DNA of 64,000 bases from Tetramitus jugosus. Taxonomy: Eukaryota > Protista > Heterolobosea. The stretch is taken from the NCBI GenBank assembly GCA_937625935.1, contig OW569374.1, positions 124,001-188,000 of the forward strand, in the 5' to 3' direction. Position 1 is the stretch's first letter. Each line of letters begins with the position of its first letter. The translations under genes and the position numbers were made by a program. Under the pieces are notes generated by a model. That model was not told where the DNA came from, did no database searches, and saw only the letters and a program-made list of their open reading frames with translations. Below are positions 5,552 through 48,633 of this stretch, piece by piece.

Positions 5552-5571
5552 AGAACAGTATTGCGTATCAT

Positions 5572-7549: not shown

Positions 7550-7602
7550 TATCTTTCTTGTTTTTATTGTAGTTTGATTTGGCGGCAAAAGTTGCCGGAG
7601 TT

Positions 7603-26615: not shown

Positions 26616-26719
26616 TTTTTTAATACAACCATTTCGGTTGCTCCGATTTTATTTTCTGACTATTTACACTGGAAAACGCTCGAAGAGCGTTATCTCCTCC
26701 GTTACTTTTCATTTCTAGG
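26616..26719 (-). mobile_element. Degenerate ~100-bp 3'-end remnant of a related non-LTR element
   Basis: T-run + atacaac...gttgctc...tttatt and an aacgctcGAAgagcgtt hairpin, resembling the 3' end at 26741-26872. Degenerate TSD. Confidence 0.55.
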
Positions 26720-26740
26720 TGGGCCTCCGCCTTTGGCGCC

Positions 26741-27706
26741 TTTTTTTTGATACAACGAGCAGTTGCTCACTTTATTGTTTATCATTCTTTCCATTAGTTT
26801 CACTTATATTCATTGTGCCGCTCGAAGAGCGGCACTTGTATTACCTTTCAGTAACGCTCGGAGAGCGTTACTTCTGTTTGTAGTCTTTTGATTGCTGGTA
26901 AAGTGTGTGCAAAGTAACGGTGCAGCGACTCTTTACCCAACTGACAAAGCTACGTGCCTTGCGAAGGGCTAATTCTAACTTCATTCCATTCTTCACCAGT
27001 GCATCCATAACCTCATCAAGAGCTTCACTTTCAACGCCCATCATTCCCGAGAGGTACTCCAGTCCCATTACATCGGATTATGTGCATAAACCCCTTTGGG
27101 TGGTGTAAATCCTTGCTCATACATTCTGGCATTGCCTTGACAGTGAGTATCAACTCTTGATAAGTTTTTAGACCAAATCCTCTGCCAATCTCAGTTTTCA
27201 GTGCCTCGAAACTTCTGACTTCGCCCTCTTGCAACAGTTGTTGCTTCTGATAGATTCCCGCTCTACTCAGTAACCTCAATTGCAACGACTGTATGAGTCG
27301 TCAGTGATGATAATTCCTCTCTCGTGCAATCTCGAAGCACACCTCTTCATGAAGGAGTGTTTGACGCTGTTGATTCTGTGGTCCGATTGGAAGACGTTCT
27401 CCAGTTGGAACGTGTTTTGTGTCTTGATATACTCAAGTGAGTCGTACCACAGAACCCTAGCATCCTCATCTCTCTTCCCTCTCATCATAGCCTTCACAAA
27501 CAGGGCAGTGCGAATCGTCACTGCTTCAGTGAAGTTCTCAAGTCCGAAAGAACCCCACTCTGGGCCTACATAGAGTAACTCACTAGGGTATCGCTTCATT
27601 GCGACTGATCCGTTCACGAGTCTCTTTCCAATGCTCGAGACCTCATCCAGTTGTTTCATAGTCCACTTGGTGAACTCACATGCATATAGGAAGATGGATG
27701 GATGCA
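26741..27706 (-). mobile_element. 5'-truncated non-LTR retrotransposon (L1/Tx1-like ORF2 C-terminal region, frameshifted), 41 bp upstream of 5S rRNA
   Basis: A8 tail (26741-48), AATAAA, TSD tccgcctttggcg at 26726-38 and 27707-19. Translated LLYVGPEWGSFGL and RAGIYQKQQLLQEGEVRSFEALK resemble post-RT L1/Tx1 motifs. Confidence 0.85.
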
Positions 27707-27747
27707 TCCGCCTTTGGCGGCAAAAACCATGACATGCAGAAACCAAT

Positions 27748-27866
27748 GTCTACGTTCATACAATGGTGGAACCACCTCTTCCCATTTCGAATCGAGAAGT
27801 TAAGCACCATCTGGCTGAGTTAGTATTGAGATAGGAGACTACTCGAGAACCCTCAGTAATGTAGGC
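27748..27866 (+). rRNA. 5S: 5S rRNA gene (119 nt), copy 1
   Basis: Terminal helix gtctac/gtaggc, A-box-like agttaagc, gttagta loop E, TTTT terminator directly after. Confidence 0.92.
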
Positions 27867-27969
27867 TTTTAGTTTTTGTTGCGGCCAGAAGTTGTGCCAT
27901 TATCATGAAATCAACAAAAACCCATTGCGCGAAAAACAAACAAGTTCTGCTGCAACGGAACAAAACAAA

Positions 27970-28965
27970 ATGGCACCAAAACACCTGGAGAAGGGCAACT
28001 CGTTGTGCTTGTTGCCCGATGATGTTTCACTTGTGATTCTATCCTTTTTGGAGGTGAGTGACTGGAGTAACATGAGACTTGCTCAAAAGTCATGGAGCAT
28101 ATTTGAACTCACACGACATAATCTCTTGTGGGCACCAGTGTTTCAATCGATTGTCGATCGCCCTCTCTTTGAAACGATTAAATCAAGTGTTCTCTCTAGA
28201 GTTCAATCGGTTGACAACTACAGAGACAAAGTCCTAGCACTGAAACAAGTCGTGTCAGAGATTGTCGATATAAGAAAGGCAGATATTCTTACTGTGCCTC
28301 CCATTTTGAATCGTTCTTATCATAAATATCTGGGTTTTGCCGGATTAGACAAGTTCTCTGCCAAGAAGATACAAGCCACGAACTATCACCTGAACACGAT
28401 TAAGGTGAGTGTCGTAGGAGATCAATTAGTCGGAAAGACCTCTATGATTATCAGGACTGCTCAAAACTGTTTCCAACAGGTCTATCATTCATCAATGCTA
28501 GACAACTTTTGTGTCGATACGGCATGGGGTAGATGGAAAAGAACAATTACATTTTGGGATATTCCTGGATCAGACGTGTATGACCATTTGAGACCACTGG
28601 CTTATCCATCAACCGATCTTTTCCTAGTTTGCTTCTCTGTTGTAAATCCTTCGAGCTTTCAAAATGTGGCAAAAAAGTGGTTGGTGGAAATCATGCATCA
28701 CTGGCCTGACGCAATCGTGATGTTGGTGGGAACAAAAATCGATCTGAGAGATAATCTTACTCCTCTGATATCGAATACTTTGACTATCACCCCAGAAGAA
28801 GGAGAGTACATGGCTAAACATCATAATTGTATATTGTATGTTGAAACTAGTGTACTCACTGGACAGAATCTTCGTTTAGAGTTCCATTCCACTCTAGCCA
28901 GATGTGCTCTCATTGGACACTATTTGCGCAGAAAAGGGAGTTCTGATAAGTGTATCCTGTGTTAA
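27970..28965 (+). CDS. F-box + Rho/Rac-like small GTPase fusion with CAAX-like end
   Basis: F-box LPDDVSLVILSFL, P-loop GDQLVGKT, WDIPG, YDHLRPLAYP, GTKIDLR, C-terminal CILC. Confidence 0.85.
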   Translation: MAPKHLEKGNSLCLLPDDVSLVILSFLEVSDWSNMRLAQKSWSIFELTRHNLLWAPVFQSIVDRPLFETIKSSVLSRVQSVDNYRDKVLALKQVVSEIVDIRKADILTVPPILNRSYHKYLGFAGLDKFSAKKIQATNYHLNTIKVSVVGDQLVGKTSMIIRTAQNCFQQVYHSSMLDNFCVDTAWGRWKRTITFWDIPGSDVYDHLRPLAYPSTDLFLVCFSVVNPSSFQNVAKKWLVEIMHHWPDAIVMLVGTKIDLRDNLTPLISNTLTITPEEGEYMAKHHNCILYVETSVLTGQNLRLEFHSTLARCALIGHYLRRKGSSDKCILC

Positions 28966-29038
28966 TGCACATGCTCAAAAGTTCGAAGTATCACATCGAT
29001 AAAAACACTTTGAGTGGTTTATTATGTAAAAATATTAT

Positions 29039-32000
29039 CTAAATATCGATGGTACACACAGGGATAGTGGATTGGTTGGTTTGCAATCGAATGGTTACAA
29101 TTTCACTCTTTTCTTCAGGTCTCATGTAGTTGGTGAAGAATGTGCACAAGACGGTTGTTCCTCCTGTCAATGATTGCTGATGATTTGCAAAGTAGTTTGT
29201 GGTTACCTTGAATTGACCGTGAGGGGCTTTTCGGAGCATGTATTCCTCTGGGCCATATCCTTGACGGAAGTCTCTGCTCACATAGCCTCCAATCTTTGTT
29301 CTTGGATAAGCATAGTAGCAATGTTCACCTCCAGCACAATCTTCATGAACATGAAGATCAATGTCAATATCATTCACATCCCAGGCCATACTAATTCTCA
29401 AATCGAGATCCATCTTGTATCGGAAGCCATCGTGACATGGTTTAAGATCTGGGTTCTTGAGCAAGCAGTGATTCAATTCGATGGCAGCAGTTTGTTCAAT
29501 CTCGTCAAATCTCAAGTCCCATTTACCTGTAATCACCTTGTTGAACAGTTCGACAGCTTCTTCGAGCTTGCCCAACTTTTCTTTGACCAACGCAAGGTCT
29601 CGATAGCTCTGTGGCTCATCAGGATTCATTTTCTTCACCTTTTCGAACACCATTTCAGCCAGTTCATACTGTTTGGCTTGATCAAGACGATAACCCACGA
29701 TTCTGAACAATTGAGCATTTTCTAATTCTAGTTCGAGAATGTTGGTCAAGATGGCAACACCGTCATTCAAGTTCTTGAGTTTTGTGAGCCAAAAGTCAGC
29801 AACATCCAAGAAGAATGCAGGAGAGCTACCCAAGTTCTTTCTCTCCTGGAGATAGGCCTGATAAGGATTGCTTGATTTGCTTATAGTAGCCATGTATGCT
29901 GCATCCGATTTCCATTCTTGAATGTTGATGGATGCAGTCACTGCGTTGGAGGACTCTTCTTCCTCTTGTTTTTCCTTTTTCAATTCAGCTGAATTGTTCA
30001 TCTCGAGTGAACGTGCGAGGGCTGGTGAAGAGCCACCTCGAGCAGAGCTATTCTTGCATTTCTTTCGTTTCAGACCGGACGAAGAGGATTGAGACGAAAA
30101 AGATGCCAGTGGAGCAGGTGCAGCTTCACATCTTGCAGATGATGATCTATGCATGGATAAGGAGGGACTTGGAGGAGGAGCAGAAGCAGTTGTCCTCTGG
30201 TCACATTTGTCGTTTACTTGTTTCTCTGGAACCTGGAATACAGTCCGATGCCATCTCTTTCTTTCCTCCCATTTTGTCAGTACACTTTGAATTTTGTTTG
30301 CTTCTCTCTTCTTCTCATCGTCTTCTTTCTGTCGGACAAGTTTCTGGTACGATTCTCTTACTGATTTCAAGCTGGCAGGAGGTGTGATTTGATGCTTAAT
30401 ATATTGATCTAAAGTTTCCAACACAATTAAAGAGGTTGTTGGAGTGACAATAGACCATTCTCGACCCAAGTGTTTCAACTCCTTCTCAAACAAGTGGGGG
30501 AACACAGATAGGGAGTTCATCTTTTGTTTTGCCCAGAGCATTGGAATAATTCTATCTGATCTCTCTTGGGCTGTTGATGCTGTAGTAGCAGATGGTTCAA
30601 TGTCATAAACTCTTGTATCGATAATATCACCGCCATATCGGAAGGCAATTGACATTTGACCCCCTTGCTTTACCTTTCCATACAAGTGGAAGTGACCACT
30701 AGGCTCCAATATGGTTGGTTCATTTGGATACACCTCTTCAAACTCCTCTGTCTCATAATCGGCAACCAAAAAGTACAAAACTGGTTTTCCTACTTGCTCT
30801 ACAATTTGTTCAACACGAAGTTTGTTTGCGTTCAAAAGCATTCCACCACTCTTTGTTGCTACGTGGGAAAGCAATTGATGATTAGCCGACATACTCGTTG
30901 AGACAATGTACAATGGGATTGAGTAAGTCGTGTAAGGTGTTGTTTCTTGACCAATGGTGTGAATACCATCAGTAAACACAATACAGAACGAAGCGGACTC
31001 GTCCAACTCAGACTCGAGCAATGATAAATTAGTAGCGCCATCGTAATCCACCTTCTTGACATGATTTAACAATGATTGAGCGTCTCCAAAAGTTGCTCTA
31101 TTTCTCTCCTGCACTGAGTTACAGAATGGAGTAAAAACAACCTGTTTTGGCTTCAACTCCTTCATGATAGCGCTCAACAGCTCCAAATCCTTTTCAATCA
31201 TCTTTGTATTGCGACTACGGCTGTAGGAGCAATCCCAAAGAACTTGAACCTTATCAGTTTTCATTCTGCTATCACTCATTGGTTTTTCAACTTTGATACG
31301 AGCACAGAAGTAATTGTCTTCAGTAATGACACAGTTGTCTTCGAGTGTTTGACTACAACGAACAGTGAGGCTGTCCACGGACTCATCCAATTGAGAATTC
31401 TCAATAGTTGCGGTCATGTACTTGCCAGATGCCTGGCGAGGTTGATTGTCAGTAATTTTACGATCAGAGTTCAATAAAAGCTCCAATGATTCTTTGTCAC
31501 TCTCACCGTACCATTCGATATTAGCCTTAACAGTACTGTTATTTCCTGGCAATCCATACGGTATTATCACCTCTGAACAAGGTACATCTGCAACAGCAGA
31601 AGTAGAAACAGGCATCGTATACACCACTCTTATCACCTTTGGCTTTTGTGGCACCAATGGATACACACGCGTTCTAAAGCTATTGCTCTGATGAGTGGCC
31701 ATCTCTACAATAGCAACTCCCTTGCCTCTATCTCTCACCTCCTGCTCAAAAATCATCTTGGCCTTCTCTTTCTCAACGGGAACAGCATCAATTAGCTCTG
31801 TGCTTCCATCCACATTCATTGCATAAGCAATGAGAGTAGCATCGTCAGGCAGTGGAAAAACAAGCTCTCCTTCCAATGTTCTATTGTGAGGATTGACAAA
31901 AGTGAACACAGAGGTAATTTTAGCGATAGGCAAGTTGACTTGAATGTGAACATCGAGGGATTGGACGTCCAGTGGAGAGCTTGCTTGATCAGAAAAGGTG

Positions 32001-32194
32001 ATCTGAGGGAGATTGTTCCTTTGATTCTTGACATCCTTGTCTTCGTTTGAAGTTGGTTGTCGTTTTTCTTGGACATCTGTTGTAGCCGCTGTAGTTGGGC
32101 ATAGTGGTTCATTATCTTTGTTGGTTTGGACTTGAAAATCGGAAACATCCTTGGAGGCGTCCGTGGCTCTCAATCGACTGAATGCAGAAAACAT
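29039..32194 (-). CDS. VIT + vWA-like + TPR + DUF2135(YfaP)-like protein
   Basis: VIT FVNPHNRTLEGELVFPLPDDA, WDCSYS, TPR PDEPQSYRDLA, and DIDLHV...SRDFRQGYGPEEY. Confidence 0.85.
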   Translation of the reverse strand: MFSAFSRLRATDASKDVSDFQVQTNKDNEPLCPTTAATTDVQEKRQPTSNEDKDVKNQRNNLPQITFSDQASSPLDVQSLDVHIQVNLPIAKITSVFTFVNPHNRTLEGELVFPLPDDATLIAYAMNVDGSTELIDAVPVEKEKAKMIFEQEVRDRGKGVAIVEMATHQSNSFRTRVYPLVPQKPKVIRVVYTMPVSTSAVADVPCSEVIIPYGLPGNNSTVKANIEWYGESDKESLELLLNSDRKITDNQPRQASGKYMTATIENSQLDESVDSLTVRCSQTLEDNCVITEDNYFCARIKVEKPMSDSRMKTDKVQVLWDCSYSRSRNTKMIEKDLELLSAIMKELKPKQVVFTPFCNSVQERNRATFGDAQSLLNHVKKVDYDGATNLSLLESELDESASFCIVFTDGIHTIGQETTPYTTYSIPLYIVSTSMSANHQLLSHVATKSGGMLLNANKLRVEQIVEQVGKPVLYFLVADYETEEFEEVYPNEPTILEPSGHFHLYGKVKQGGQMSIAFRYGGDIIDTRVYDIEPSATTASTAQERSDRIIPMLWAKQKMNSLSVFPHLFEKELKHLGREWSIVTPTTSLIVLETLDQYIKHQITPPASLKSVRESYQKLVRQKEDDEKKREANKIQSVLTKWEERKRWHRTVFQVPEKQVNDKCDQRTTASAPPPSPSLSMHRSSSARCEAAPAPLASFSSQSSSSGLKRKKCKNSSARGGSSPALARSLEMNNSAELKKEKQEEEESSNAVTASINIQEWKSDAAYMATISKSSNPYQAYLQERKNLGSSPAFFLDVADFWLTKLKNLNDGVAILTNILELELENAQLFRIVGYRLDQAKQYELAEMVFEKVKKMNPDEPQSYRDLALVKEKLGKLEEAVELFNKVITGKWDLRFDEIEQTAAIELNHCLLKNPDLKPCHDGFRYKMDLDLRISMAWDVNDIDIDLHVHEDCAGGEHCYYAYPRTKIGGYVSRDFRQGYGPEEYMLRKAPHGQFKVTTNYFANHQQSLTGGTTVLCTFFTNYMRPEEKSEIVTIRLQTNQSTIPVCTIDI

Positions 32195-32354
32195 GATTCG
32201 TAGTTGTGGTTGTGTTAATGGTACAGTTGTTTTGTTTGTGCTTGAGTGAAAATCAGAATGACGAGTTGAACTCGCGGCTGAAAAAGCTCCACTCGGGCTC
32301 CTTGGAACTCTTGCGGAGATTTGTTGTTCTTCACCTCAAATGTCACTCTGGCGC

Positions 32355-33674
32355 TTATTTGTTAACAACAATCACCACATCACCTAAAATTGAGCATGAC
32401 ACTAAGCGTTTCAGGTTGGATACGAAGAAATTCAAGCTCGTTTTTGATGATGCGGATCTCAGCAACACCATGTTAATGAAGTACCCAGAGGCGTAGCTAG
32501 CCACTTGATAGTGAGGATCATCCAACAGTTGACAGTATTCCGGGCTTGTCTTTTGTTCTTCAAGTTTTAGCAAAGACGTATTGTGATCATTGAGGTGAAG
32601 GTCGAACAAGCGCCCAGTACTTGTATCTACAACATGAAAGGTTTTCGCTCGTCCAGTGACCATAGGATGCGCTATTGTTGATGCATCAATGCTCCAAAGT
32701 GTTTGATCAGTGGCGTAAAGACTTGAAGAAGTAAAGACACGCTTCATTGAGTCCACAAAAACAGCATCATACCACGAGCATGAAAAGTCTTTGATTATTG
32801 CAGTTCCAAGACGACTCAGATCTAGCCTTATAAAACCTTTGCTAGCAAGAGCACTATGTGGAACGAGCTCATGGATATCGCCAGCTAAGTATATATCCCC
32901 CTGGCATAATACAACCATAAATTTGCTTCCACCCTTAACCTTTGTCAGGCGACCGAAATTGAATGGTTGTCGTGAGTTACTCAATGTATCAATGAAATGT
33001 GTTTCGGTTGCACTGGGGACATAAACAATGCCCCTGACTCCCAATTGACCATGCCTGTTTGATCCGACGGAATACACTTGATCTCCGTGTATTGGGTCGT
33101 ATTGAAACAAAAGATGTTCATTTCCGACTCCGAAAATGGAAACGGACCACCGGTGCCTTGACCTGAGAACAGGTTCGTTCGAACTATAGTTTGATCCAAA
33201 ACGCCCTACAGTGTACAACTCACCGTCTGTCGTAACAAATGCAGAGAACCACCCAGCGCAGGCAATATCTCGGATGCGAATGTTGCGTTCCACAAACCAG
33301 AGCATCAATGTCGGTACAGACACATTTTCTCTATGTAGTGCATGATTCTGATCATAGCACAACAATTGACCAGATGAATTAGGGCCTACACCATAAACAA
33401 AGCCATCTTCTGTCAAAAACAAGCAATGAATACTACCAATCTCAATCTTCTTTAACTGAACATTGGACAGTTTCTTGTCCAATGTATAGGGTATCTGGAG
33501 CTTCGAAAATCCAGGACAATGCTCTTCAATGTCATCCATTGTCATTGATATTGGACCAGGCGATAGCATCACTCCCAAGACTTGTTCTGCTTGCTGAGTG
33601 TTCGCTTGTGCATCCCACAGTTCTTGGCTGTCCAAATGTTGACCACTCACCAATAAAATATTATCTTGATCCAT
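32355..33674 (-). CDS. RCC1-repeat protein
   Basis: [25 protein letters not shown] and [13 protein letters not shown] repeats. Confidence 0.8.
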
Positions 33675-33771
33675 TTCTGAGCAGATTTTTCTTTTGTTGG
33701 TTGTTTTCTGGAAGTGCTCCGACTCAAATCTGATAGTTAGATATCTATTACTCCCAGATAAAATTGATAAC

Positions 33772-33897
33772 TCGGAGAGACAACAAAAATTTGGTCAACA
33801 CATGTCTCAGCTCATGAAGTTGGCTGAAGAGTTCAATGTGGCAGTGTTTATTACCAATCAAGTTCAAGCGGATCCTAGCGGTGGTAGCATGTTTGCT
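33772..33897 (+). pseudogene. DMC1: Isolated ~42-codon fragment of meiotic recombinase DMC1
   Basis: [42 protein letters not shown] matches the DMC1-type ERQQKL...[12 protein letters not shown]..DP segment. No other exons nearby. Confidence 0.75.
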
Positions 33898-34021
33898 CTG
33901 ATGATGGTTTCATTGAAGCTAAGGAATAGCGTTGTTTTTCGGTAACAAGCCAATACAGACAAACAATCAATTTATTCAAATTAAAACTTGGATTTGGGCG
34001 CGAGGCCAAGGGCGCGAACTT

Positions 34022-35341
34022 TTTTTTTTTTTTTTTTTTTGTTCCATACAACCAAGTGTGCGCAAGCACACGATTGCTCATTTATTGACTTGTTTTGTGA
34101 GTGACGACCCGTAGGGCGTCGCTCACTCTTCTTCTCTTGTTGTCCCCGACGGTGCACCTACAGGTTGGAAGAATCACTCAAGTGAGTGTTTTGATTGATG
34201 CCCTTCATCAAAGAGCGTAACCTTGTAGTAGGACCGCCGATGGACACAGAGCCATCTGTTGTTGTTTTCTTGTTTTGGGCCTTGTTGCTCCTCAGATCAC
34301 CCAGTGTGATCCTAGCACTCCTCTTCTTGTTGTCATTGAGTTGTGGACTTTGAATCTCCTTTTCGGAGTCGTCGTCCACATCCACAATGACTGGTTCGTC
34401 CTCAGTCAAACCATACCTTTTGCGTGCACTGGCCAGTGCCAATGCAGCAATTTCCTTCTTCGCTCTAGCAAACACTGGAGAAGTAACATTCACTTGCTCC
34501 AGGATTTGCTGATTTTCAGCGCTGAGCTGTGCAACAGGCACTGTTGGCAGTGGTGTTGCACTCCTTTGTTCTTCTGTCTCCATCAGACCAGGAGCAGTTC
34601 TTTGTGCAACTTCTTGTTCCGGTATCGGAACCGGTTTGTTGCCCTCTTGGCCCTTTGTCTTTGCCAATTCCTTGGTGAGTTCTGTGACCTGTCGACGCAG
34701 TGCGTCAACCACCGTCAGCAGCTCCTCGTACATCTTTGTCAACCTCTTGTTGACGGCCTTGAGAGGATCATGTGGCCTCTCGACGTATCGAGTGACCGTG
34801 GCCTTTACCTTGTTCTCTCCGGTGAGCACTGCTTGTGCATAGGTTTCATCACCCATGACCACGAAAGCAGTGTCACGCTTCTTGAGCACACTGGCGACCT
34901 TTTCAGGTCCCAGTAGCTTCTTGATGTCGTCCACTGACATGTTCTTCATGCCATGGACGACCACCTTTCTTGTGCAATCAACACTGCGCTTGGGTGCAGC
35001 AGTGCTATTGCCAATCCTCCTTTGCTTGTTGAACAAATCAACAAAGTCATAGATGCGGTCACCCTTGACCGTCACCCATGCAACAAAGCGTTGCTGGCCT
35101 TTCCTTTTGATGACTTGGACTCGGTTGAGCCAGTCACCAAACTCCTCTCCAATCTTTCTTGCCAAAGATGACTGAGAGACGCCATTACCGTTGCCAGTAA
35201 TGACGACCTCTCTGTCACTTGGCCTCGTGCCTTTCCGTGCAGTGGTCCACACTGCATAACGGCTGTTGCCGTATTCCTTCACCAAATTTGTTGAATCACC
35301 AGACATGTGATTCCGTTTTTTTCTGCGTTTTTTTTTTTTTT
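34022..35341 (-). mobile_element. 1.32-kb non-autonomous ORF1-only non-LTR retroelement, 38 bp upstream of 5S rRNA
   Basis: ~A20 tail (34020-40), 17-bp TSD gccaagggcgcgaactt (34005-21; 35342-58), 3' UTR with AATAAA and hairpins, 5' A14 run. Confidence 0.9.
34158..35306 (-). CDS. Retroelement ORF1-like protein (two putative RRMs + coiled coil + basic disordered tail)
   Basis: Intact 382-aa ORF filling the element. RRM-like EVVITG..FVAWVTV and KVVVHGM..TAFVVM segments; heptad LTKMYEELLTVVDALRRQVTELTKELAK. Confidence 0.75.
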   Translation of the reverse strand: MSGDSTNLVKEYGNSRYAVWTTARKGTRPSDREVVITGNGNGVSQSSLARKIGEEFGDWLNRVQVIKRKGQQRFVAWVTVKGDRIYDFVDLFNKQRRIGNSTAAPKRSVDCTRKVVVHGMKNMSVDDIKKLLGPEKVASVLKKRDTAFVVMGDETYAQAVLTGENKVKATVTRYVERPHDPLKAVNKRLTKMYEELLTVVDALRRQVTELTKELAKTKGQEGNKPVPIPEQEVAQRTAPGLMETEEQRSATPLPTVPVAQLSAENQQILEQVNVTSPVFARAKKEIAALALASARKRYGLTEDEPVIVDVDDDSEKEIQSPQLNDNKKRSARITLGDLRSNKAQNKKTTTDGSVSIGGPTTRLRSLMKGINQNTHLSDSSNL

Positions 35342-35379
35342 GCCAAGGGCGCGAACTTCAATGATCAACATAACCAAAT

Positions 35380-35498
35380 GTCTACGTTCATACAATGGTG
35401 GAACCACCTCTTCCCATTTCGAATAGAGAAGTTAAGCACCATCTGGCTGAGTTAGTATTGAGATAGGAGACTACTCGAGAACCCTCAGTAATGTAGGC
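35380..35498 (+). rRNA. 5S: 5S rRNA gene (119 nt), copy 2
   Basis: Identical to copy 1 except gaatCgag versus gaatAgag; TTTT terminator. Confidence 0.92.
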
Positions 35499-37330
35499 TT
35501 TTGCCTTTTTTGGTTTGGACACGCGTAGAAGCTGTCACTTTCCGATGTTTATTGATGGGAGTCGGCCTCATTCTTACGTATTTTTGAAACAGAAAAGTGG
35601 AGCTGAACTTTGTGAATCAAGTTCTATTCATGTGAGTCCATCTGATCTTCTGAACCATGGTGTGAATGTTTGGGAGTAGGTTTGCCGTTCAGTGGTGGTA
35701 GGTTTTTAGAGCTTTTTGGTCTTCAATATTGTATGAATACAAAATTTGTGTGTATTCAGATATTGAAAAGTTAGATTATCCTCACAGAGGTAGTGGTCTC
35801 ATCAGATTTTCTTGAGACATCTACAAGTAGTTGTCATTTCGTCGTTCCATACCTCTGAGCCTTTTAGTTTTGTTTTGACGATGGCCGTTGTGTGATATGT
35901 TTGGGAGTTGATTTGCCTTTCAGCGGTCGTATTATCTTTGAGAGCTATTCAGCTGCTCTTGTTTGCTTGTGTTCGTTCTTTTATCTGGAAATGAATACAA
36001 ATTAAGTTGTGGTGGGGTCTGTGCTCTGAGAAGAAAAGAAATGATGAGCTCATTGAACTTCTTCGCAAGGGGAACAAAAATTGAGAATTTTTGTATGAAC
36101 ATACTTGTTGTTGGTTATTAATTGGTAGAGTGATGTGATTTCGTTTCGAAAGTGAATGGATTTCGTTGCGAAGAACCAACAACAAACCTCAATGTTACCA
36201 TTACAACGTGTTGGGGTGCGATGTTGTGACAGATGAGGACTGTGCAGAAATCTCTTTTTCCTCGATTTGAAGTAGATATGCGAATGGAGGTTTCAACCAT
36301 TCTTAGAAGTCTGGCTCCCCATGAGGAAATAAAACTCCGCTCGATCATCTACGACTGCTTGATTTACTGGACCAAAGTCGGGAAAAACAAGTTTTGAGGA
36401 ATGATGCAATCAGCTGTAATGAACCGATTAGGTATTGGATGGGGATTACTCATCTTTTTCATTTCACTTGCGATCGCTTCCATAGCTATTGCATTGGCTT
36501 GTTTCTTCAATTCCAAACGAAAGAAAGTGTAAGTACACCTCCAGGTTTGCCTTCCAAGATATTTTCTTAAATAATTAACTCATTCTCGGACATGTGTTCT
36601 TCAGTTGTTGCGGCATCTTTGGCTTTCTTCTACCTCTGATTGTCCTCTCGTTCTTCTTGCTTGCTCCTAAAGCGCCACTCACTCCGGCAACAGTTGACAT
36701 GACATTCAGCGAGAATGAGAATATGGTATGTCTCTTTTTGGAATACTAAGATATGTTTGTCCATGAATTACTTACAGATTGACCTCTCGTTTCCTCGGGA
36801 AAACAGCCAAGAGACAATCACTTCTTCTTTAGACTCTTCCTCGTCCTGATACTGTTGTTGGCGGTGTTGATCAATTTCATCATTTTTATCAAAAATGTAG
36901 TATTTGCTCCAAACCATGCCAGACCGTTGGTTGCCTTTATTAACAAGGAGGACTAACGGGAAGGCCCATTTCTTTTGTGGTTCAATCCCGCAAAAAAGGA
37001 CGAATCATCAATGTGACGGGTTGAAGCAACACTCCAGAAAAAGTTTTCGACCAAAACTCCGTTCAGACAGTGAGCCACAACGCTTCCACAAACACACATT
37101 AGCTTTTGTGACATCCTTTGCTGCTGTTGTTTGTCACTGACGATACCCAACAAAAAAAAACAAGCCCACTTCCCATCAAAGAAGAACTCAACAACGCACT
37201 CTACTCTCTCCCTATTGAGTGACTCACATCAATAACAACAGCGCCACGACCAACACAAACAACAGCCGGTAGTCACTCCTTCCTATACCATTGCAAACAA
37301 TACCACCATCACCACCAAGAGCTGTTTACA

Positions 37331-39970: not shown

Positions 39971-39997
39971 GATCAGAAGAGAACATCAAAAAACGAA

Positions 39998-41062: not shown

Positions 41063-41269
41063 AATCTCAAAGGAAATATAAATATCAAGGTTGACGACAG
41101 GTTCAGTTCATCAAAAGTGAAACAACACGTCAAACACCAAAAAGTCCTAATGGGCAAGAATGAATGGCCCGGGCTAACGATTTTCCGTCGGAGTTCCCTA
41201 ATTCCCCAACACCGACAACAACAAAAAAAAACAAAAGGACAACAACAAACAACGAACGACGGAAACAGA

Positions 41270-42316: not shown

Positions 42317-42686
42317 CACTCTTAAAGGCAGCAAATGGAGTTGTGTGAGATGAATTGACCTCTTGCACGATTCGCTCCCTTTTTTTGTCTTGTAATTTAT
42401 TTTCCCTATGAAGCTTGCCATGATACTTCTCAGCAGTTTGTTCTTGCTACGCAAGCAAGGATATCAATCAACAACAACAACGTCGAACAACAACCATAAC
42501 AGCAGCAAATGTCTCTGGAAATTGTAAATTTGTTGTAGATGGCAGATGAGCAAAACAACCACCCCAAACCAAAATAAATGTTGATCACTGAAATGCATGC
42601 TTGCTTCAAGCGGCCAATTAGCGCACCAAAATGTGTGTTTTCTTCACAAGTTTTTTATCTCAAGAAAAAAGCAACAACAAAGAACA

Positions 42687-43946
42687 ATGAACTTTAGAGG
42701 CGTGTCCATTGATCAAGATTCTCGATTCTCCAGGAAAGACACCAAACTGCGCAACAGCATTCCCTGTCCCTCCATTTTCTCCCAATCGGTCAATCTCAAG
42801 CACGTGAACATGAATGCAATGAGACCGTGGATCAAATCTCGTTTGACAGAGTTGGCCGGATACGAAGACGAAATTCTTACAAATTATGCAATTGAAATGT
42901 TGGAGACTGCGATTCAATCCAATGAAAGCAATAGTGATGTCGATCCAAGAGAAATGCAAGTCAATTTAACTGCATTGACCTATCAAGAAAAGGCGTTTCA
43001 GTTCATGGAGGAATTGTGGACTCATTTGGTGTCGGCTACGAATACGCCCAGTGGAATACCAGAGGAATTTTTGGCTCGTGAGAGAGAAAAGGTCATGGAA
43101 GCACGGAGGCAACAAGAACAGATTAGAAGTCAGATTGAACGAAGAAGTACGAGCTCGAGAAAACCAGTGATACGTGATAGTTCGAGCCGAGGTGCTGCGA
43201 ACGAGGATGCTCGCTATTCGCAGCAGAGGAGAAGAAGAGATGTTGTTGTGAAGCGAGAAGAGCAGGAGGAAGCAGGAGAGCAGGTAGCGGCGACAGAGCC
43301 AGCACGAATTGGTCAAAACACATTGATGAAAGATGAACGCAACAGACAATACAGAGATGATCATGATTATCGATCAAACAAGCGATATCGAAGTGAGAGT
43401 AGTGGTGGTGGTAGTAATTATCAATCCAGAAGAAGCAACGAGCGAGCTGTGAGTGATGACTCATCGGATGATGACGAAACTAAGAATAATAGTGATTCTG
43501 ATGGATACATTAGGAGAAGACGAGACAGAAAGGATGAAAATGAGAGACGTGATCGGCATGCAACTGAAAGTAGTCGAAGTAGCTCTCGATACAGTCATGG
43601 CGATAGTAGTAGTCGTAGAGATCGCAGTAATAGAGATAGGAGAGAGGATTACGAATATAGAAATCAGCGATATTCGAACAGTGATAGAGAAAGGCACAGA
43701 TATGACAGGAGAGACGATAATAGGAGAGGTGAATATGATAGTTACGACTATAGGAGCAGACGAGGAGTAGATGATAGAGCGGAACATGCAAGATATCAAG
43801 TACCATCTCAGCGTGAGACAAAGCCCAGAAAATCACCTCTTGATGCACCACCAAGCGCGAGTCCGTCTTCTTCGACGAACACATTGTCAGCAGCGGAAAT
43901 TGCTGAGAAACTGAGAGCAAGGATCAAGACCGAACAAGTGCAATAA
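42687..43946 (+). CDS. PWI-domain RS/RD-rich splicing factor, SRRM1-like
   Basis: FRGVSIDQDSRF, VNMNAMRPWIKSRLTEL, DPREMQVNLT, FMEELW, SGIP. Confidence 0.85.
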   Translation: MNFRGVSIDQDSRFSRKDTKLRNSIPCPSIFSQSVNLKHVNMNAMRPWIKSRLTELAGYEDEILTNYAIEMLETAIQSNESNSDVDPREMQVNLTALTYQEKAFQFMEELWTHLVSATNTPSGIPEEFLAREREKVMEARRQQEQIRSQIERRSTSSRKPVIRDSSSRGAANEDARYSQQRRRRDVVVKREEQEEAGEQVAATEPARIGQNTLMKDERNRQYRDDHDYRSNKRYRSESSGGGSNYQSRRSNERAVSDDSSDDDETKNNSDSDGYIRRRRDRKDENERRDRHATESSRSSSRYSHGDSSSRRDRSNRDRREDYEYRNQRYSNSDRERHRYDRRDDNRRGEYDSYDYRSRRGVDDRAEHARYQVPSQRETKPRKSPLDAPPSASPSSSTNTLSAAEIAEKLRARIKTEQVQ

Positions 43947-43991
43947 TCTGTGAATACAATGCCTCTCAAATTGAACCCTTACGTCTATTAT

Positions 43992-44993
43992 TTATTCTTT
44001 GTGTTTGTAGATAAATTCACCAGTTTCATAATCGAAGAATCGATTGGTTCTCGAGTGGTAAGTGGCAAATCGATACAGGATTGAGATTGGAGTTAGGAAC
44101 GCTATTCTCGATCCACTACCCTTAATATTTCGTATCCTGTCATAAATGTAGGAAGCCACAGTCGAAGGTTCCTCAGCCAAAATATTGAACAGGCGTTTGG
44201 AGCGCAATGGAGTGCCCTTCTTGACCAATAGATCAGTGATCACCATTCCGGGAGATAATCGATGGATACCAATTCGATCATTGGCTAACTCTTTTTGCAC
44301 TGACAGAGTAAACTGTGAGACAGCTGCTTTGGTGCAACCATAGACTGACATGTTGGCTGTTGCACCGCCTCTCGATCCAGCTCCTTCCATATTGAATACG
44401 TGACCTCCCTTCTTTTGACTTAACATCAATTTTATCGCAGCTCTCGTGCAAATAATGGAACCAAACATGTTTACACTGACAATACGATCAATTTGCTCCA
44501 CATCTAGCTCGTGCAAGGGTTTGTTCACCACTGTGGACACACCAGCATTGTTGATCCAGACATGGATGAGCCCATCAGGTCCAATCGTCTTCTGAATATA
44601 TGAAACAAATTGATTCATACTGGCTTCACTCGAAACATCACACACGACACCATGAATGCATGGTTCATCGTCTTCCTGCGATGTTTTACCCAGGTAAAGC
44701 TTATTGTTTTTCACTTGTTGTTGAATGGTTGACACAGCCTTCTGGAGTCTTTGTTCATTGGTTGCACAAATGATAACACTGTGACCGTTTAGACAAAATT
44801 GCTTGGCCAAGGCATAACCAATTCCTCTGGAGCCACCAGTAATCACAACATTTAGCTTTTTCACCTTGGTCAAGTTCATTCCGCCAGATGGTGGCGCCAA
44901 AATTCGCATGAAAAAGATCGCCGTAGCCAGCACAATCACGCCAACGGCGACAAAAACTGGGTGAGAAGAAAGAAGCCAAATGATGTTCAACAT
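43992..44993 (-). CDS. Short-chain dehydrogenase/reductase, NYC1/NOL (chlorophyll b reductase)-like
   Basis: TGGSRGIG, WINNAG, GHVFNMEGAGS, YGCTK, LSPGMVITDLL, FNILAEEP. Confidence 0.75.
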   Translation of the reverse strand: MLNIIWLLSSHPVFVAVGVIVLATAIFFMRILAPPSGGMNLTKVKKLNVVITGGSRGIGYALAKQFCLNGHSVIICATNEQRLQKAVSTIQQQVKNNKLYLGKTSQEDDEPCIHGVVCDVSSEASMNQFVSYIQKTIGPDGLIHVWINNAGVSTVVNKPLHELDVEQIDRIVSVNMFGSIICTRAAIKLMLSQKKGGHVFNMEGAGSRGGATANMSVYGCTKAAVSQFTLSVQKELANDRIGIHRLSPGMVITDLLVKKGTPLRSKRLFNILAEEPSTVASYIYDRIRNIKGSGSRIAFLTPISILYRFATYHSRTNRFFDYETGEFIYKHKE

Positions 44994-45149
44994 GTTTTTG
45001 TGATCAAATTTTAAGGTTGTTCTGCGATACCTGCACAGTACGTACGATACGGCCGTATTTCTTGCTTTTGGTTTTGAGCTGCTCCGTAGGAGAATTTATT
45101 TCTCTGAGATGGAAATTAAAATAGAATCTTCAGGAGCCAAAAACAAGAC

Positions 45150-48110
45150 ATGAAAAAGAAATTCCAGTCCAGTGGTGGTGATGATCGAGATGATGTTGTT
45201 GAAGGTGGTATTTCACTTTGGCTGACAGCACTACTGATTGTTCACATGATTGGTATTCATTTCTTTACAAGTGGATTCCTGTTAACTCGGGTGCAGTTGG
45301 ATTCCAAGAGTCAGTGCACCGTGCTGCCAGCATCGCTACAACAAACTGTGAATGGCTCAAAAACGATGGACGATAAGAATTGTTGGATTCCACTGGCATC
45401 AAGTGCTCAAATGAAGCATAAGCGAGTGATTTTGTTTATTATTGATGCATTTCGGTTCGATTTTGTGTTTAAACAGGATTCGATGCCATTTCTGAATGGA
45501 TTGCTGTCGAAGCGGAGAGAAAGCCAACGTGAACAGTCCAATGCATATCCTTTATTATTCAAATTTGTGGCTGATGCGCCCACGACGACAAGCCAAAGAC
45601 TGAAAGCTTTAACAACTGGTAGTTTGCCCACTTTTATTGACGCAGGTAAAAACTTTGACTCGGATGCTGTTCAGGAAGACAATTGGGTTTATCAAATGGC
45701 GAAAAATAAGAGAAAGGTTGTTGCATTGGGTGATGATACTTGGAAGCACTTGTTTCCAACAGTAGACGCGTCGAGCCCGCTGTTTACGAGGGAGAGACTA
45801 TTTCCGTCATTTGATGTGTGGGATTTACACACTTTGGATGATTCAATATTACGATATTTGGGCGCTGAGTTGAATACGACAATGAGCGATGATGAACTAC
45901 AACAATTGTACCGATCATATGAGAGTATTGATAGAGGAGCACATGACTTTAATGAAACGGATTTCGGGAAATGGGACGTGCTAATTGCACACTTTTTAGG
46001 AGTTGATCATGCGGGTCATAGATATGGCGTTCATCACCAGGAGATGCACAATAAGTTAAAGCACATGGACTCCTTACTTCAAAATATTATTGAGAATCTG
46101 CCCGAAGACACTCTGTTGATGATGTTTGGTGATCATGGTATGGATGAAAATGGTGATCATGGAGGCGGAACTGACCAAGAGGTAAATTCTGCACTGTTCG
46201 TATACAGTAAACATGCAAGCCAGACAGCTGTAGATAATACGATTAAGGTATTCGACTCTTCCACAAACGAACAACTGAAGTACGTGGAGGAGCATGATAT
46301 TTCATTTCGAACAATCTCCCAGATTGACTTAGTACCAACACTCTCGTTTTTATTGGATGTTCCAATACCTTTCGGTAATCTAGGAACCATTATTCCAGAA
46401 GTATTTCAAAGCATATATGGAGAAAGGAACTCAATGACCTTCAATTTAGATCTAATCAGGACGAATAGCCACCAAGTTTGGTCGTATCTCACTGAGTATG
46501 CCACTACCGATTCAAGTTTATTGTCACTCGATCAAATATCTCAACTAAGAAGCCAACGAGAATCTGCCGATCAAGCATTCTCTCAAATAACTGAGCAGTC
46601 CTCCCCTTCAGAAGTATTCAACGCATTCAACAAGTATCATGATTTTTTACAAGAAGCATCACGCATATGCAGAGAACGGTGGGCTAGCTTTGATATGATG
46701 AATATGGCGCTAGGTATTGGATTGAGCTCATGTTCCACCATTGCAATCATTCTGCTTGCAATTGGAGTGAATGCAAAGCCGGCACAATTTTATGTTTATT
46801 TTTTCATATTTGAATCGATGATCTATTTTGCGATTAAGTTTGTAATCCAACCGAATAATTTAGTAACGTGGATTGGAACGTCTGGTGTATTCTTGCTCAA
46901 CAATATTGACATGATCAAGTCGTTCACGACCTTTAGTTACTTAACACTACATTTTTGGTCAATGAGCAAGAATCGAGATAATAGCCGAGAAACCGAACAT
47001 CGTTACAACCTCGTTCAAAGTGTGCAAATCTATTTGTCAATAATTATGGTTGTAGCTCTACTGGGATCAATATTTTCCAATAGTTATATTGTTTATGAGG
47101 ATCGAATAATTTTGTACTGCCTCCTGACGCAAGCCATTCTCTTTTTCATTGGAGAGAGAAGCAAGTACAAGCATCTACCATATCATATAATGTACATGTT
47201 AGCGATGAGGTATTCCTATCAGAAACTTCGTCTTCGAATTCATGGAACGCATCAAATTTTATCAGCAGTACCACAACCTTTCTCTATTAGTTCGACTGTT
47301 GTTGTTTCAATTGGAATTATTGGATGTGTTGGGTTTTCCGCCAGGAAGATGTCAACCACGATTAGAAAACTACTGGTGATGTATTATGTGGTATTGCTAG
47401 GAATCATCAGTAGTTACTGGTACTTAAATTACTATGACATAAGAACCGAAGGTGTGAACTTGCACTTGTTGCTCCCTCGTACGGTTTATTTATTGTCGTT
47501 CATATCGATATGCATCGGTTTGGTTATGGATGCAAAGCATGACACAGATATTTTGTTTCTGGTGGCCTCTATTCCATTCATTTTACTCAAGGGCCACTCG
47601 TACTTGGTAATTTGGTTGGCATTGTTTATTCAGATTAGTTGCTTTTCTGTGATCACAGAGCAGAGTCTTCGAGGTAGATCACTAGGAAGTACATGGCTGC
47701 GCATATTTCACTTGGCATTCTTCAGTCTACAGTACTTTTTTGCTCTAGGACAGCAGAACTCATTGAATACTATTCAATGGACAAGTGCCTTCGTGGGGAT
47801 CGATAATGCCCAATTATTCTTCTCGGGATTCCTAGTCATCCTTAATACCTTTAATACCAAAATTCTATTTACATTATCTCTGGCATCATTAACAAGAAAG
47901 GCAAGAAATGTGTTCGCGTTGTTCAGCGCATTGTTTTGTGCTATAGGCACTTTCACAATGTTTTGTGCATTCATTCAAAGGAGGCACCTTATGGTTTGGG
48001 CCATATTTGCTCCAAAGTTCATTTTTGATAACATCAGCACTGTGGTCATGTCCGTCATAACGATAGCAGTACTTCTGATTAAGAACAAAACAAAAAAGAA
48101 GATTGAATGA
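45150..48110 (+). CDS. PIGO: GPI ethanolamine-phosphate transferase 3 (PIG-O/GPI13)
   Basis: FTSGFLLTR, ADAPTTTSQRLKALTTGSLPTFID, HFLGVDHAGH, GDHGM, RRHLMVWAIFAPKFIF. Confidence 0.92.
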   Translation: MKKKFQSSGGDDRDDVVEGGISLWLTALLIVHMIGIHFFTSGFLLTRVQLDSKSQCTVLPASLQQTVNGSKTMDDKNCWIPLASSAQMKHKRVILFIIDAFRFDFVFKQDSMPFLNGLLSKRRESQREQSNAYPLLFKFVADAPTTTSQRLKALTTGSLPTFIDAGKNFDSDAVQEDNWVYQMAKNKRKVVALGDDTWKHLFPTVDASSPLFTRERLFPSFDVWDLHTLDDSILRYLGAELNTTMSDDELQQLYRSYESIDRGAHDFNETDFGKWDVLIAHFLGVDHAGHRYGVHHQEMHNKLKHMDSLLQNIIENLPEDTLLMMFGDHGMDENGDHGGGTDQEVNSALFVYSKHASQTAVDNTIKVFDSSTNEQLKYVEEHDISFRTISQIDLVPTLSFLLDVPIPFGNLGTIIPEVFQSIYGERNSMTFNLDLIRTNSHQVWSYLTEYATTDSSLLSLDQISQLRSQRESADQAFSQITEQSSPSEVFNAFNKYHDFLQEASRICRERWASFDMMNMALGIGLSSCSTIAIILLAIGVNAKPAQFYVYFFIFESMIYFAIKFVIQPNNLVTWIGTSGVFLLNNIDMIKSFTTFSYLTLHFWSMSKNRDNSRETEHRYNLVQSVQIYLSIIMVVALLGSIFSNSYIVYEDRIILYCLLTQAILFFIGERSKYKHLPYHIMYMLAMRYSYQKLRLRIHGTHQILSAVPQPFSISSTVVVSIGIIGCVGFSARKMSTTIRKLLVMYYVVLLGIISSYWYLNYYDIRTEGVNLHLLLPRTVYLLSFISICIGLVMDAKHDTDILFLVASIPFILLKGHSYLVIWLALFIQISCFSVITEQSLRGRSLGSTWLRIFHLAFFSLQYFFALGQQNSLNTIQWTSAFVGIDNAQLFFSGFLVILNTFNTKILFTLSLASLTRKARNVFALFSALFCAIGTFTMFCAFIQRRHLMVWAIFAPKFIFDNISTVVMSVITIAVLLIKNKTKKKIE

Positions 48111-48384
48111 AGGAAGCCAGACACACGTTTTCGGCTTGTCAGCTTCCCGTGTAGCGGCACACACTGCATAATGGCACGAAATTTTCAGCTTTTAAATTTA
48201 ACAACAACAAATAGTGCTCCGTTTCCGCAAACTTTTATTTTTCTTTTGTGTGAGAGCAGGCTTGCTCAATTGCCTTACATGATGTGGTGCTTGTCCAGTG
48301 GAGTCCCTCTTGCGAGTGTGGTCCACACAGCATAGCGTGGGTTCTCATACTCTCGAACATTTTTGGGATTTCGCCTCATCTGGT

Positions 48385-48511
48385 TGTTTTTTTTTGATAC
48401 AACGCGCAGTTTCTCACTTTATTGTTTATCATTCTTTCCATTAGTTTCACTTAGCCATTGTGCCGCTCGAAGAGCGTCACTTGTCTTACCTTTCAGTAAC
48501 GCTCGAAGAGC
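48385..48511 (-). mobile_element. ~127-bp 3'-UTR-only copy of the non-LTR element, 49 bp upstream of tRNA-Asn
   Basis: Near-identical to 26741-26867; A9 tail; 18-bp TSD gatttcgcctcatctggt at 48367-84 and 48512-29. Confidence 0.92.
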
Positions 48512-48560
48512 GATTTCGCCTCATCTGGTAAAAAATACTGGATATGATCTAAAAATGTAA

Positions 48561-48633
48561 TCCTCCATGGCTCAGTTGGTAGAGCGTCAGGCTGTTAACC
48601 TGCAGGTCGTTGGTTCGAGCCCAACTGGAGGAG
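48561..48633 (+). tRNA. tRNA-Asn (GTT)
   Basis: Acceptor stem tcctcca/tggagga, D-arm gctcagttggtagagc, anticodon loop ctGTTaa, T-arm gttggttcgagcccaac, TTTT shortly downstream. Confidence 0.95.

Follow-up and report, generated by a model that had tools for sequence, protein, structure and literature searches.

LINEs of the Mutsu, Dewa, Keno and R2 types recognise a defined sequence inside a target gene or repeat, and the first three insert sequence-specifically into multicopy RNA genes. Position-specific integration guided by a protein has, to our knowledge, essentially one studied LINE model, TRE5-A of Dictyostelium, whose ORF1 protein reportedly contacts TFIIIB. The TRE5-A/B/C elements of Dictyostelium discoideum, filed under the L1 clade, insert 40–54 bp upstream of tRNA genes and 37–41 bp upstream of 5S genes in opposite orientation (PMC5911963), and 61% of the tRNA genes in this species carry at least one TRE, either TRE5 or TRE3 (PMC5006619). 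A second non-LTR element, NLTR-B of Polysphondylium pallidum, is unrelated to the TREs and is found 39–64 bp upstream of tRNA genes (PMC5006619, PMC5911963), a precedent for more than one origin of TRE5-like behaviour; how TRE5-type targeting originated is itself described as unsettled (PMC5006619). Yeast Ty3, which is TFIIIB-directed (PMC5911963), likewise finds a safe harbour upstream of Pol III genes, as do yeast Ty1 and Dictyostelium DGLT-A. Unlike the elements described below, these three are LTR elements that carry an integrase, with neither target-primed reverse transcription nor a poly(A) tail, and their distances to the gene differ (1–4 bp for Ty3, 13–33 bp for DGLT-A, and within ~1 kb for Ty1). 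Among LINEs, the habit of landing safely beside Pol III genes was formerly described only for the dictyostelid TRE5 and NLTR-B elements.

The genome analysed here contains several related families of APE-type non-LTR (LINE) retrotransposons, represented by insertions in a 64-kb window, the whole stretch of DNA under analysis. The Pol III genes of the window are two 5S rRNA genes and one tRNA-Asn gene (Table 1), each with an insertion just upstream that lies on the strand opposite to the gene, is poly(A)-tailed and is flanked by a target-site duplication (TSD), with 5' junctions at -41, -38 and -49. Rfam and ARAGORN calls together with the TSDs bear out the first-pass annotation, which had noted three such gene–insertion pairs with these junctions and with TSDs of 13–15, 17 and 18 bp; the first TSD is the 13-bp TCCGCCTTTGGCG. 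Its further observation that the 64 kb hold no such element elsewhere also stands, as BLASTN and TBLASTN comparison with full-length elements of the same genome matched three regions only and found no element DNA in the window outside 26342–27746, 34022–35341 and 48230–48512.

Table 1. Pol III genes, element copies and target-site duplications in the 64-kb window
Feature	Position	Strand	Basis or remark
5S rRNA gene, target 1	27748..27867	+	Rfam RF00001, 95.3 bits, full length
Family A copy (autonomous family), 5'-truncated and internally deleted	26741..27706	-	86–91% identity to full-length L072, L075
TSD of family A copy, TCCGCCTTTGGCG	left 26726..26738, right 27707-27719		junction -41
Older 3'-terminal element fragment	26616..26717	-	86% identity to L075 element positions 2486-2585
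Family C ORF2-region short fragment	26342..26427	+	80% identity over 89 nt to L077 element
5S rRNA gene, target 2	35380..35499	+	Rfam RF00001, 100.4 bits
Family B element, full-length 1.32 kb, ORF1-only, non-autonomous	34022..35341	-	ORF1/3' UTR matches genome-wide
Family B ORF1, 382 aa	34158..35306	-	AlphaFold, Foldseek, family A ORF1 comparison
TSD of family B element, 17 bp	left 34005..34021, right 35342-35358		junction -38
tRNA-Asn(GTT) gene, target 3	48561..48633	+	ARAGORN; Rfam RF00005, 67.4 bits
Family A 3'-terminal fragment, 127 bp, poly(A) tail	48385..48511	-	85% identity to L072 positions 4523-4653
TSD of 3'-terminal fragment, 18 bp	left 48367..48384, right 48512-48529		junction -49
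Older L075-type 5' portion, internally deleted	48230..48359	-	88–89% identity to L075 positions 49-106, 1275-1355

The three insertions differ in how much of an element they retain. The copy next to the first 5S gene, its 5' end toward the gene, comprises the C-terminal part of ORF2, a 3' UTR with 28 matches in the genome and a T8 tail, the internal deletion being seen on comparison with full-length relatives. Stacked behind its poly(A) tail is the older 3'-terminal fragment, which starts with a run of T and then shows the 3'-end motif, AATACAAC. Upstream of the second 5S gene stands a complete family B element, in which ORF1 lies between a short 5' UTR and a hairpin-containing 3' UTR that leads into a poly(A) tail. 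The tRNA gene is preceded by an extreme 5' truncation (93% identity to the family A 3' UTR), and the older L075-type portion beyond it is a stack, the later insertion having separated it from the tRNA gene. The short family C fragment lies in the opposite orientation to the neighbouring element copies. A candidate arrangement in which a 5S gene and the family B copy would sit inside an intron of a Rad51-like gene was dropped, the downstream exon indicated by outside RNA contigs being absent from the window.

A census of 58 loci, each anchored on the element's 3' UTR and together a sample of the genome rather than the whole, extends this picture beyond the window. A Pol III gene lay within 1.6 kb on the 5' side of the element at 35 of the 58 loci and on the 3' side at five (Fisher p = 4e-9), target status being left unassigned at ~12 anchored loci whose 5' ends fell outside the flank examined, and the nearest Pol III gene was head-to-head with the element in 35/35 cases (p = 6e-11). 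Random placement, which had been named at the outset as the outcome that would speak against targeting, is therefore not the pattern of these loci. At least 15 different tRNA species as well as 5S genes serve as targets. Junctions of the 21 TSD-defined insertions at tRNA genes average -44.6 (sd 2.5, range -39 to -51) with a peak at -43 to -46, and those of the six at 5S genes average -38.7 (sd 1.2, range -37 to -41); full-length copies have tRNA junctions at -43, -45, -48 and -53. The priming nick falls at -29.3 (sd 1.7) for tRNA genes and at -23.2 for 5S genes. A TRE5-like distance had been proposed from the window, and the genome-wide values match the ranges published for TRE5 at both gene types (PMC5911963), with the same head-to-head arrangement. 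Viewed from the genes, in a sample of 20 tRNA genes only, element homology ended ~38–58 bp upstream of 11, so that roughly half are occupied, comparable to the TRE occupancy of D. discoideum. Stacked insertions are common, and one site can be used repeatedly: at L077 a family B copy and a 4.97-kb autonomous element share a 15-bp TSD that is present three times. For two U6 genes, whose own sequences were left unread, no element was near among the matches listed.

The 27 TSDs defined in this way are 10–19 bp long (mean 15 bp) and unrelated in sequence, with no consensus in them or in their flanks; A/T content is higher downstream of the priming nick than in the duplicated segment. Together with the narrow junction peaks, the lack of a consensus supports the initial proposal that targeting is positional rather than sequence-specific, with a fixed orientation, and by distance, orientation and lack of target sequence specificity the elements are TRE5-like in behaviour. 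The same data weigh against an endonuclease that recognises a motif upstream of Pol III genes, as Mutsu, Dewa and Keno might lead one to suspect. A subset of 5S genes does possess a common upstream GTGGAAATAGCTCA block overlapping the nick, but both 5S genes of the window lack this block and have nevertheless been hit at -41 and -38, and the unrelated duplications and flanks, as well as insertions located upstream of genes rather than within them, make such an enzyme highly improbable. It is the absence of a common target sequence and the intactness of the downstream gene that set these insertions apart from Mutsu, Dewa, Keno and R2-type elements.

Selection after the event offers another route to the same distribution, in which elements insert at random and only the harmless copies near Pol III genes survive. 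In a gene-dense genome, where most random insertions would be harmful, such filtering has some appeal. It cannot, however, produce a spread of ~2 bp, 35/35 concordant orientations and reuse of the same nick; moreover, the pattern is already present in very young copies (99–100% identity), and the other intergenic DNA of the window holds no copies. Survivorship is thus a very improbable explanation for the distribution.

The full-length autonomous copies that the first-pass annotation had called for were recovered, ORF1 and ORF2 both being intact in L072, L074 and L077. Autonomous elements measure 4.2–5.1 kb and, as in TRE5, contain two ORFs and have an oligo(A) tail and TSDs. ORF2 combines an APE endonuclease with a reverse transcriptase and has a weak Cys/His motif, comparable to the zinc-finger-like region of TRE5. 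It matches RVT_1 with E = 7e-29. Its match to Exo_endo_phos exceeds the 24.5-bit cut-off in L072 (25.2 bits) and falls just short of it in L074 (22.1 bits), and the C-terminal match to zf-RVT (E = 6e-4) stays under the cut-off for that domain. An endonuclease and reverse transcriptase of this type in ORF2, poly(A) tails, variable 5' truncation and TSDs identify these elements as LINEs. The ORF1 product, a predicted RNA-binding protein, folds in the model into two RRM-like domains followed by a long helix, which may form a coiled coil. In three families the ORF1 stop and ORF2 start overlap as UAUGA, whereas a -1 frameshift is reported for TRE5-A, and the 5' UTR, at ~22–35 nt, is devoid of the A/B/C modules of TRE5. 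RNase H is absent from the families characterised here, which sets them apart from NLTR-B, and is found in another family of this genome, L073. Hairpins and a terminal stem in the 3' UTR are conserved within family A, and the terminal 3' motif was recognised by eye in families B and C as well; its GCAAC...GUUGUAU stem, adjacent to the poly(A) tail, may be the signal that allows the ORF2 protein to be borrowed.

Such borrowing is of particular relevance to family B. Mammalian HAL1 (half-L1) and deletion derivatives of TRE5-A are non-autonomous LINEs with an intact ORF1 and no ORF2, and family B likewise combines an intact ORF1 and LINE-type ends with many copies and no ORF2, its 1.32-kb element being devoid of reverse transcriptase similarity. 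The ORF1 is present in at least 60 copies of 87–100% identity, four of them 100% identical, and its 3' UTR gave 82 first-look candidates, of which 40 were scored, aligning at 91–100% identity. The reading frame is intact in 22 of 23 full-length ORF1s, and the shared substitutions, 23 non-synonymous and 38 synonymous (dN/dS ~0.18), show that it is under purifying selection. In the AlphaFold model (pLDDT 80–88 over residues 30–160) RRM-like domains are predicted at ~17–105 and 114–173, followed by a long helix at 181–218 and a disordered basic tail, and tandem-RRM proteins are the best Foldseek matches. Unlike HAL1 and the TRE5-A derivatives, family B has an ORF1 only 24–48% identical to those of the autonomous families sampled (~48% for family A) and has nothing but the terminal 3' motif in common with them, so that it did not arise from any of them by a simple, recent deletion. 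It presumably uses an ORF2 protein in trans.

The reading that best accommodates these observations, with a probability of about 0.8, is one of LINE families that integrate by target-primed reverse transcription where the Pol III pre-initiation complex directs them, probably through contact between ORF1 protein and TFIIIB. That complex, and not DNA sequence, would set the site of integration. The priming nick would be made on the sense strand of the gene, ~29 bp before the 5' end of the mature tRNA (at 5S genes, ~22–23 bp before +1), and the second nick ~15 bp further upstream, an arrangement by which the element would always come to lie head-to-head with the gene. That tRNA and 5S junctions differ by a constant 6 bp would fit measurement from the transcription start, provided that the pre-tRNA leader is ~6 nt long, a length that is assumed here. 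In other eukaryotes the usual TFIIIB footprint covers what is here the duplicated segment, and this geometry points to TFIIIB as the probable tether, with ORF1 protein, by analogy with TRE5-A, as the part of the particle that may make the contact.

Targeting could be just as positional with a tether other than ORF1-bound TFIIIB. Candidates include TFIIIC and a subunit of Pol III, the role that AC40 plays for Ty1; alternatively, the ORF2 protein could read a feature of the upstream DNA or its chromatin, for example a bend or the absence of nucleosomes. The TFIIIB contact is a candidate only, and tRNA and 5S genes have TFIIIC, TFIIIB and Pol III in common; the richer A/T content downstream of the priming nick might suit an ORF2 endonuclease that itself reads DNA shape. 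On the other hand, both nicks fall at the usual TFIIIB site of other eukaryotes and not over the TFIIIC-bound internal promoter, and a precision of ~2 bp is unlike the nucleosome-periodic ~1 kb window of Ty1 (PMC5911963). The dN/dS of family B fits a function of ORF1 needed in cis; RNA binding could, however, be sufficient to account for it. On balance such a tether is unlikely, yet deserving of consideration beside an ORF1–TFIIIB contact.

The elements have been recently active, and contigs from outside this genome bear on how they spread. A groundwater-metagenome contig joins position 33985 to 35342 and lacks the insert, with the break precisely at the edge of the TSD; it would represent an empty site (one contig, with a shorter side of 26 nt and 90% likeness). 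This is relevant to a scenario of co-duplication, in which segmental duplication, or amplification of a single repeat unit, would have carried the element along with its gene, as the many dispersed copies of the 5S genes could suggest. The TSDs, however, flank the element alone, the many tRNA species targeted each have unique flanks, and inserts are missing from paralogous 5S genes and from some of the sampled tRNA genes, as they are from the site on that contig, so that the chance of co-duplication is close to negligible. Metatranscriptome contigs cover ORF1, one run being oligo-dT-selected, with contaminating DNA a possible source. A metagenome scan with the ORF1 alignment yielded two loci; at one a family B copy lies 42 nt from a truncated tRNA-like gene (seen by eye, with no ARAGORN call), and the other ends at the contig edge.

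A heterolobosean host had been suggested initially, and a single host gene supports this, its best named eukaryotic matches being Acrasis kona (62%) and Naegleria lovaniensis (55%). The expected gene density of the host is borne out by the genome data, and its TBP gene is located at G000:C22:405042-405557. The host belongs to Discoba, while that of TRE5 belongs to Amoebozoa, and the 5S genes targeted here are chromosomal, dispersed and present in many copies, whereas those hit by TRE5 reside on an extrachromosomal rDNA element. The closest relatives of ORF2 (35–51% identity) come from one NCBI assembly and two ENA metagenome assemblies, on contigs too short to span a target gene. No further match exceeds ~30% identity, and those from named organisms are of animal or algal origin; among the ten top HMMER matches looked up, the six with a named source were arthropod, nematode or green-alga proteins, and a word-based protein search returned 13 weak matches, the best at 24% identity. 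In PDB sequence searches the reverse transcriptase was about equally distant from the solved R2 and L1 proteins and ORF1 had no match, and an Atlas search led from ORF2 to generic APE+RT clusters and from ORF1 to nothing usable. In agreement with the initial impression, no such element was found described for Heterolobosea in the literature, candidate preprints included.

It is tempting to propose that LINE integration guided by the Pol III complex evolved independently in Discoba, converging to the base pair on the geometry of TRE5, with the targeting module residing in a tandem-RRM ORF1 protein, a tentative view whose chances fall slightly short of even. If the module does reside in ORF1, this would account for the success of an ORF1-only element, which borrows ORF2 protein alone and outdoes all other members, and for the selection that has preserved its ORF1, and if the system is indeed a second, independent one, the contact between LINE particle and TFIIIB could be mapped by comparison. 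That another supergroup, unrelated to the first, harbours a recently active system with equal base-pair geometry at tRNA and 5S genes shows this solution to be general for compact genomes and points to the conserved TFIIIB–DNA architecture as the measuring device. Several autonomous families alongside an ORF1-only element under selection constitute natural material for finding the protein that reads the target, and the tethering rules are of interest for directing retroelement-based insertion to safe genomic sites.

ARAGORN and Rfam searches find exactly three Pol III genes in the window (G000:C31:124001-188000 of the same-genome assembly G000, 26.35 Mb in 56 contigs), all on the + strand, and just upstream of each lies an insertion on the opposite strand. 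As the first-pass annotation had read from the DNA, every insertion has a poly(A) tail, which appears as a terminal T-run on the + strand, and sits between the two copies of a direct target-site duplication (TSD); the annotated junction positions and TSD lengths hold. Comparison with full-length elements of the same genome confines element DNA to 26342-27746, 34022-35341 and 48230-48512, all of it adjoining the three Pol III genes and none elsewhere in the 64 kb, in agreement with the original claim. At two loci, older fragments behind the younger insertion are stacks from repeated hits. A separate 89-nt piece of a family C (L077-type autonomous element) ORF2 region lies in opposite orientation at 26342-26427 (+), ~300 bp past the stacked insertions that precede the first 5S gene.

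Pol III genes and associated element DNA in the window (5' junction in bp upstream of the mature tRNA 5' end or 5S +1)
Feature	Coordinates	Strand	TSD (bp)	5' junction
5S rRNA	27748-27867	+		
5S rRNA	35380-35499	+		
tRNA-Asn(GTT)	48561-48633	+		
Insertion	26741-27706	-	13	-41
Insertion	34022-35341	-	17	-38
Insertion	48385-48511	-	18	-49
Older fragment behind younger insertion	26616-26717			
Older fragment behind younger insertion	48230-48359			

The two window 3' UTRs were searched against the genome (28 scored matches for one; for the other, 82 first-look candidates, of which 40 were scored), and 58 loci were analysed with 1.5 kb flanks; only the 3' UTR served as anchor, which kept the choice blind to the 5'-end surroundings. 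At 35 of the 58 loci a tRNA or 5S gene lies within 1.6 kb of the element 5' side, the nearest one being head-to-head in every case (two-sided p = 6e-11), against 5 of 58 with a Pol III gene, in mixed orientation, in the equal-length 3' flank (Fisher p = 4e-9 versus the 5' side). At least 15 different tRNA species are among the targets. The remaining loci are mostly long copies whose 5' end falls past the flank, or stacks; L040 and L014 have a weak or partial tRNA match (Rfam) on the 5' side. Each of the four extendable long copies terminates at a tRNA gene (Asn, Gly, Phe or Leu), and at five loci of family B, the element at 34022-35341, the 5' end directly abuts the T-run and 3' end of a same-orientation element. 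In a gene-centred sample of 20 tRNA genes, element homology stops ~38-58 bp upstream of 11, while eight have no match to the element library and one only a distant fragment. Random placement, or lack of a distance peak or an orientation bias, was looked for and not found in the sampled loci; the observation of Pol III-gene-directed insertions is confirmed, and its interpretation supported.

The geometry was defined from 27 insertions with an unambiguous TSD. For 21 tRNA targets the 5' junction lies at -44.6 (sd 2.5, range -39 to -51) and the priming nick, on the poly(A) side, at -29.3 (sd 1.7), with a mean TSD of 15.3 bp; for six 5S targets the values are -38.7 (sd 1.2, range -37 to -41), -23.2 and 15.5 bp. 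No common sequence was found among the TSDs and flanks of these 27 insertions, bearing out the proposal that targeting is positional rather than sequence-specific. Were distance measured from the transcription start, a pre-tRNA leader of ~6 nt would give the 6-bp junction shift between tRNA and 5S targets, and both nicks would fall at about -23 and -38. TFIIIB in other eukaryotes usually covers a segment from ~-23 to -38 of the start, so that on the start-based reading the nicks would lie within TFIIIB-covered DNA. We infer from this geometry that TFIIIB is the tether, the ORF1 protein presumably making the contact by analogy with TRE5-A. The precision is directly visible at L077, where an autonomous element of 4.97 kb and a copy of family B share an identical 15-bp TSD present in three copies, and therefore the same nick was used twice.

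Full-length autonomous copies, whose recovery had been called for, were obtained as L072 (4655 bp; ORF1 375 aa, ORF2 1147 aa), L074 (about 5.07 kb; 377 and 1280 aa) and the L077 element (346 and 1294 aa). ORF2 matches RVT_1 (E = 7e-29) and, close to its C-terminus, zf-RVT below threshold; with Exo_endo_phos, L072 reaches 25.2 bits and exceeds the 24.5-bit cut-off, which L074 misses at 22.1 bits. Searching the genome with the Pfam RT model gave 74 matches, many in open frames of 1150-1330 aa. In these three diverged families the ORF1 stop and ORF2 start overlap as UAUGA, which suggests that ORF2 may be translated by termination-reinitiation. ORF1 matches no Pfam family; its AlphaFold model (pLDDT 80-88 for residues 30-160) predicts a pair of beta-alpha-beta-type domains and, after them, a helix of 38 residues that may form a coiled coil, with tandem-RRM proteins, e.g., DND1, HuD and U2AF65, as best Foldseek matches. 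Another LINE family occurs at L073 (G000:C1:196000-205999), 4856-9986 (-), with an ORF2 of 1332 aa carrying APE, RT and RNase H, and an unrelated ORF1.

Full-length copies start with an oligo(A) of 0-17 nt and a conserved GCAGAAAAAAACG motif (window 35328-35341, L074, L077, and the 5' junctions of L029-L058). The oligo(A) could stem from non-templated addition ending reverse transcription, from homopolymer slippage or from variable transcription starts. Since the element 5' UTR spans no more than ~22-35 nt, the promoter must lie within ORF1 or be taken from the region upstream of the Pol III gene.

Family B is a 1.32 kb unit with a 5' UTR of ~35 nt, an ORF1 of 382 aa and a 3' UTR, and lacks ORF2. 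Its ORF1 is present in the genome at least 60 times (87-100% identity; four copies are 100% identical), and a second ORF1 family is ~50% identical to it. Family B did not arise by simply deleting part of a sampled autonomous element: the ORF1s are 24-48% identical, and the terminal 3' motif (GCAAC, loop, GUUGUAU, few bases, poly(A); aligned within family A, an autonomous LINE family, and recognised by visual reading in families B and C) is the only common part. Among 23 full-length ORF1s, 22 are intact, and substitutions in at least three copies comprise 23 non-synonymous and 38 synonymous changes (site ratio 3.34; dN/dS ~0.18), so the ORF1 protein is needed by active lineages. Contigs of two RNA libraries, one oligo-dT-selected, cover ORF1, consistent with its expression.

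Sequencing runs of 15 studies, groundwater, soil and hot-spring metagenomes among them, contain nearly identical family B sequence. One groundwater contig joins 33985 directly to 35342, skipping the element exactly at the TSD-predicted boundary and leaving a single TSD copy; judged from this one contig, with a shorter side of 26 nt, it resembles an unoccupied site in a relative. The outside metagenome contig L098 carries a family B copy (96% identical), stacked on another element and head-to-head with a truncated tRNA-like gene 42 nt away, which was read by eye where ARAGORN called none. Closest to ORF2 among 1.8 billion representative proteins are three contig-derived fragments (35-51% identity), further matches being at most 30% identical and the named ones arthropod, nematode and alga proteins. 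For a host oxidoreductase gene at 21848-23305 (-), the best named eukaryotic matches are Acrasis kona (62%) and Naegleria lovaniensis (55%), and environmental sequences reach 80-87%; judged by this one gene, the host would be a heterolobosean other than the named species sequenced so far. A probable pseudogene fragment, a lone Rad51/Dmc1-like exon at ~33735-33897 (+), has no adjacent exons; contigs from outside, DNA and RNA alike, match 33772-33897 only, and one RNA contig runs on into a Rad51-like exon missing from the window.

A genome search for 5S rRNA genes gave 47 scored matches and ~777 first-look candidates; the genes lie singly, scattered over most contigs, not in tandem array. Their summed contig depth in one metagenome is ~1000x that of the flank, and a subset has a GTGGAAATAGCTCA block upstream. 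Among 20 tRNA upstream regions (L078-L097), many copies of a tRNA species with 5' end GGTCGTTTAGC have a TCTAAATATAGAA-like block at -14 to -1, a possible upstream promoter element or duplication relic. Contigs G000:C54 and G000:C56 have the same tRNA coordinates (941, 12773, 14364, 14438, 44585) and look like assembly duplicates of one organellar or extrachromosomal molecule.

In Dictyostelium, TRE5 lands upstream of its target genes in opposite orientation, at 40-54 bp for tRNA and 37-41 bp for 5S genes, with its ORF1 protein contacting TFIIIB; for NLTR-B of P. pallidum the distance upstream of tRNA genes is 39-64 bp (PMC5911963). Since the published TRE5 distances and orientation match those found here, the Tetramitus system works like TRE5. 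In contrast to TRE5, ORF1 and ORF2 are joined by the UAUGA overlap rather than a frameshift, the 5' UTR is very short, and the 5S targets are chromosomal, dispersed and present in many copies. According to PMC5006619, TRE-like elements were not found outside dictyostelids and their origin is open. No description of such Pol III-gene-targeted elements in Heterolobosea was found in the literature searched, and a 2026 heterolobosean transposon survey makes no mention of tRNA. The Tetramitus elements show TRE5-type targeting, a known behaviour, in a new lineage, where it is possibly convergent with TRE5.
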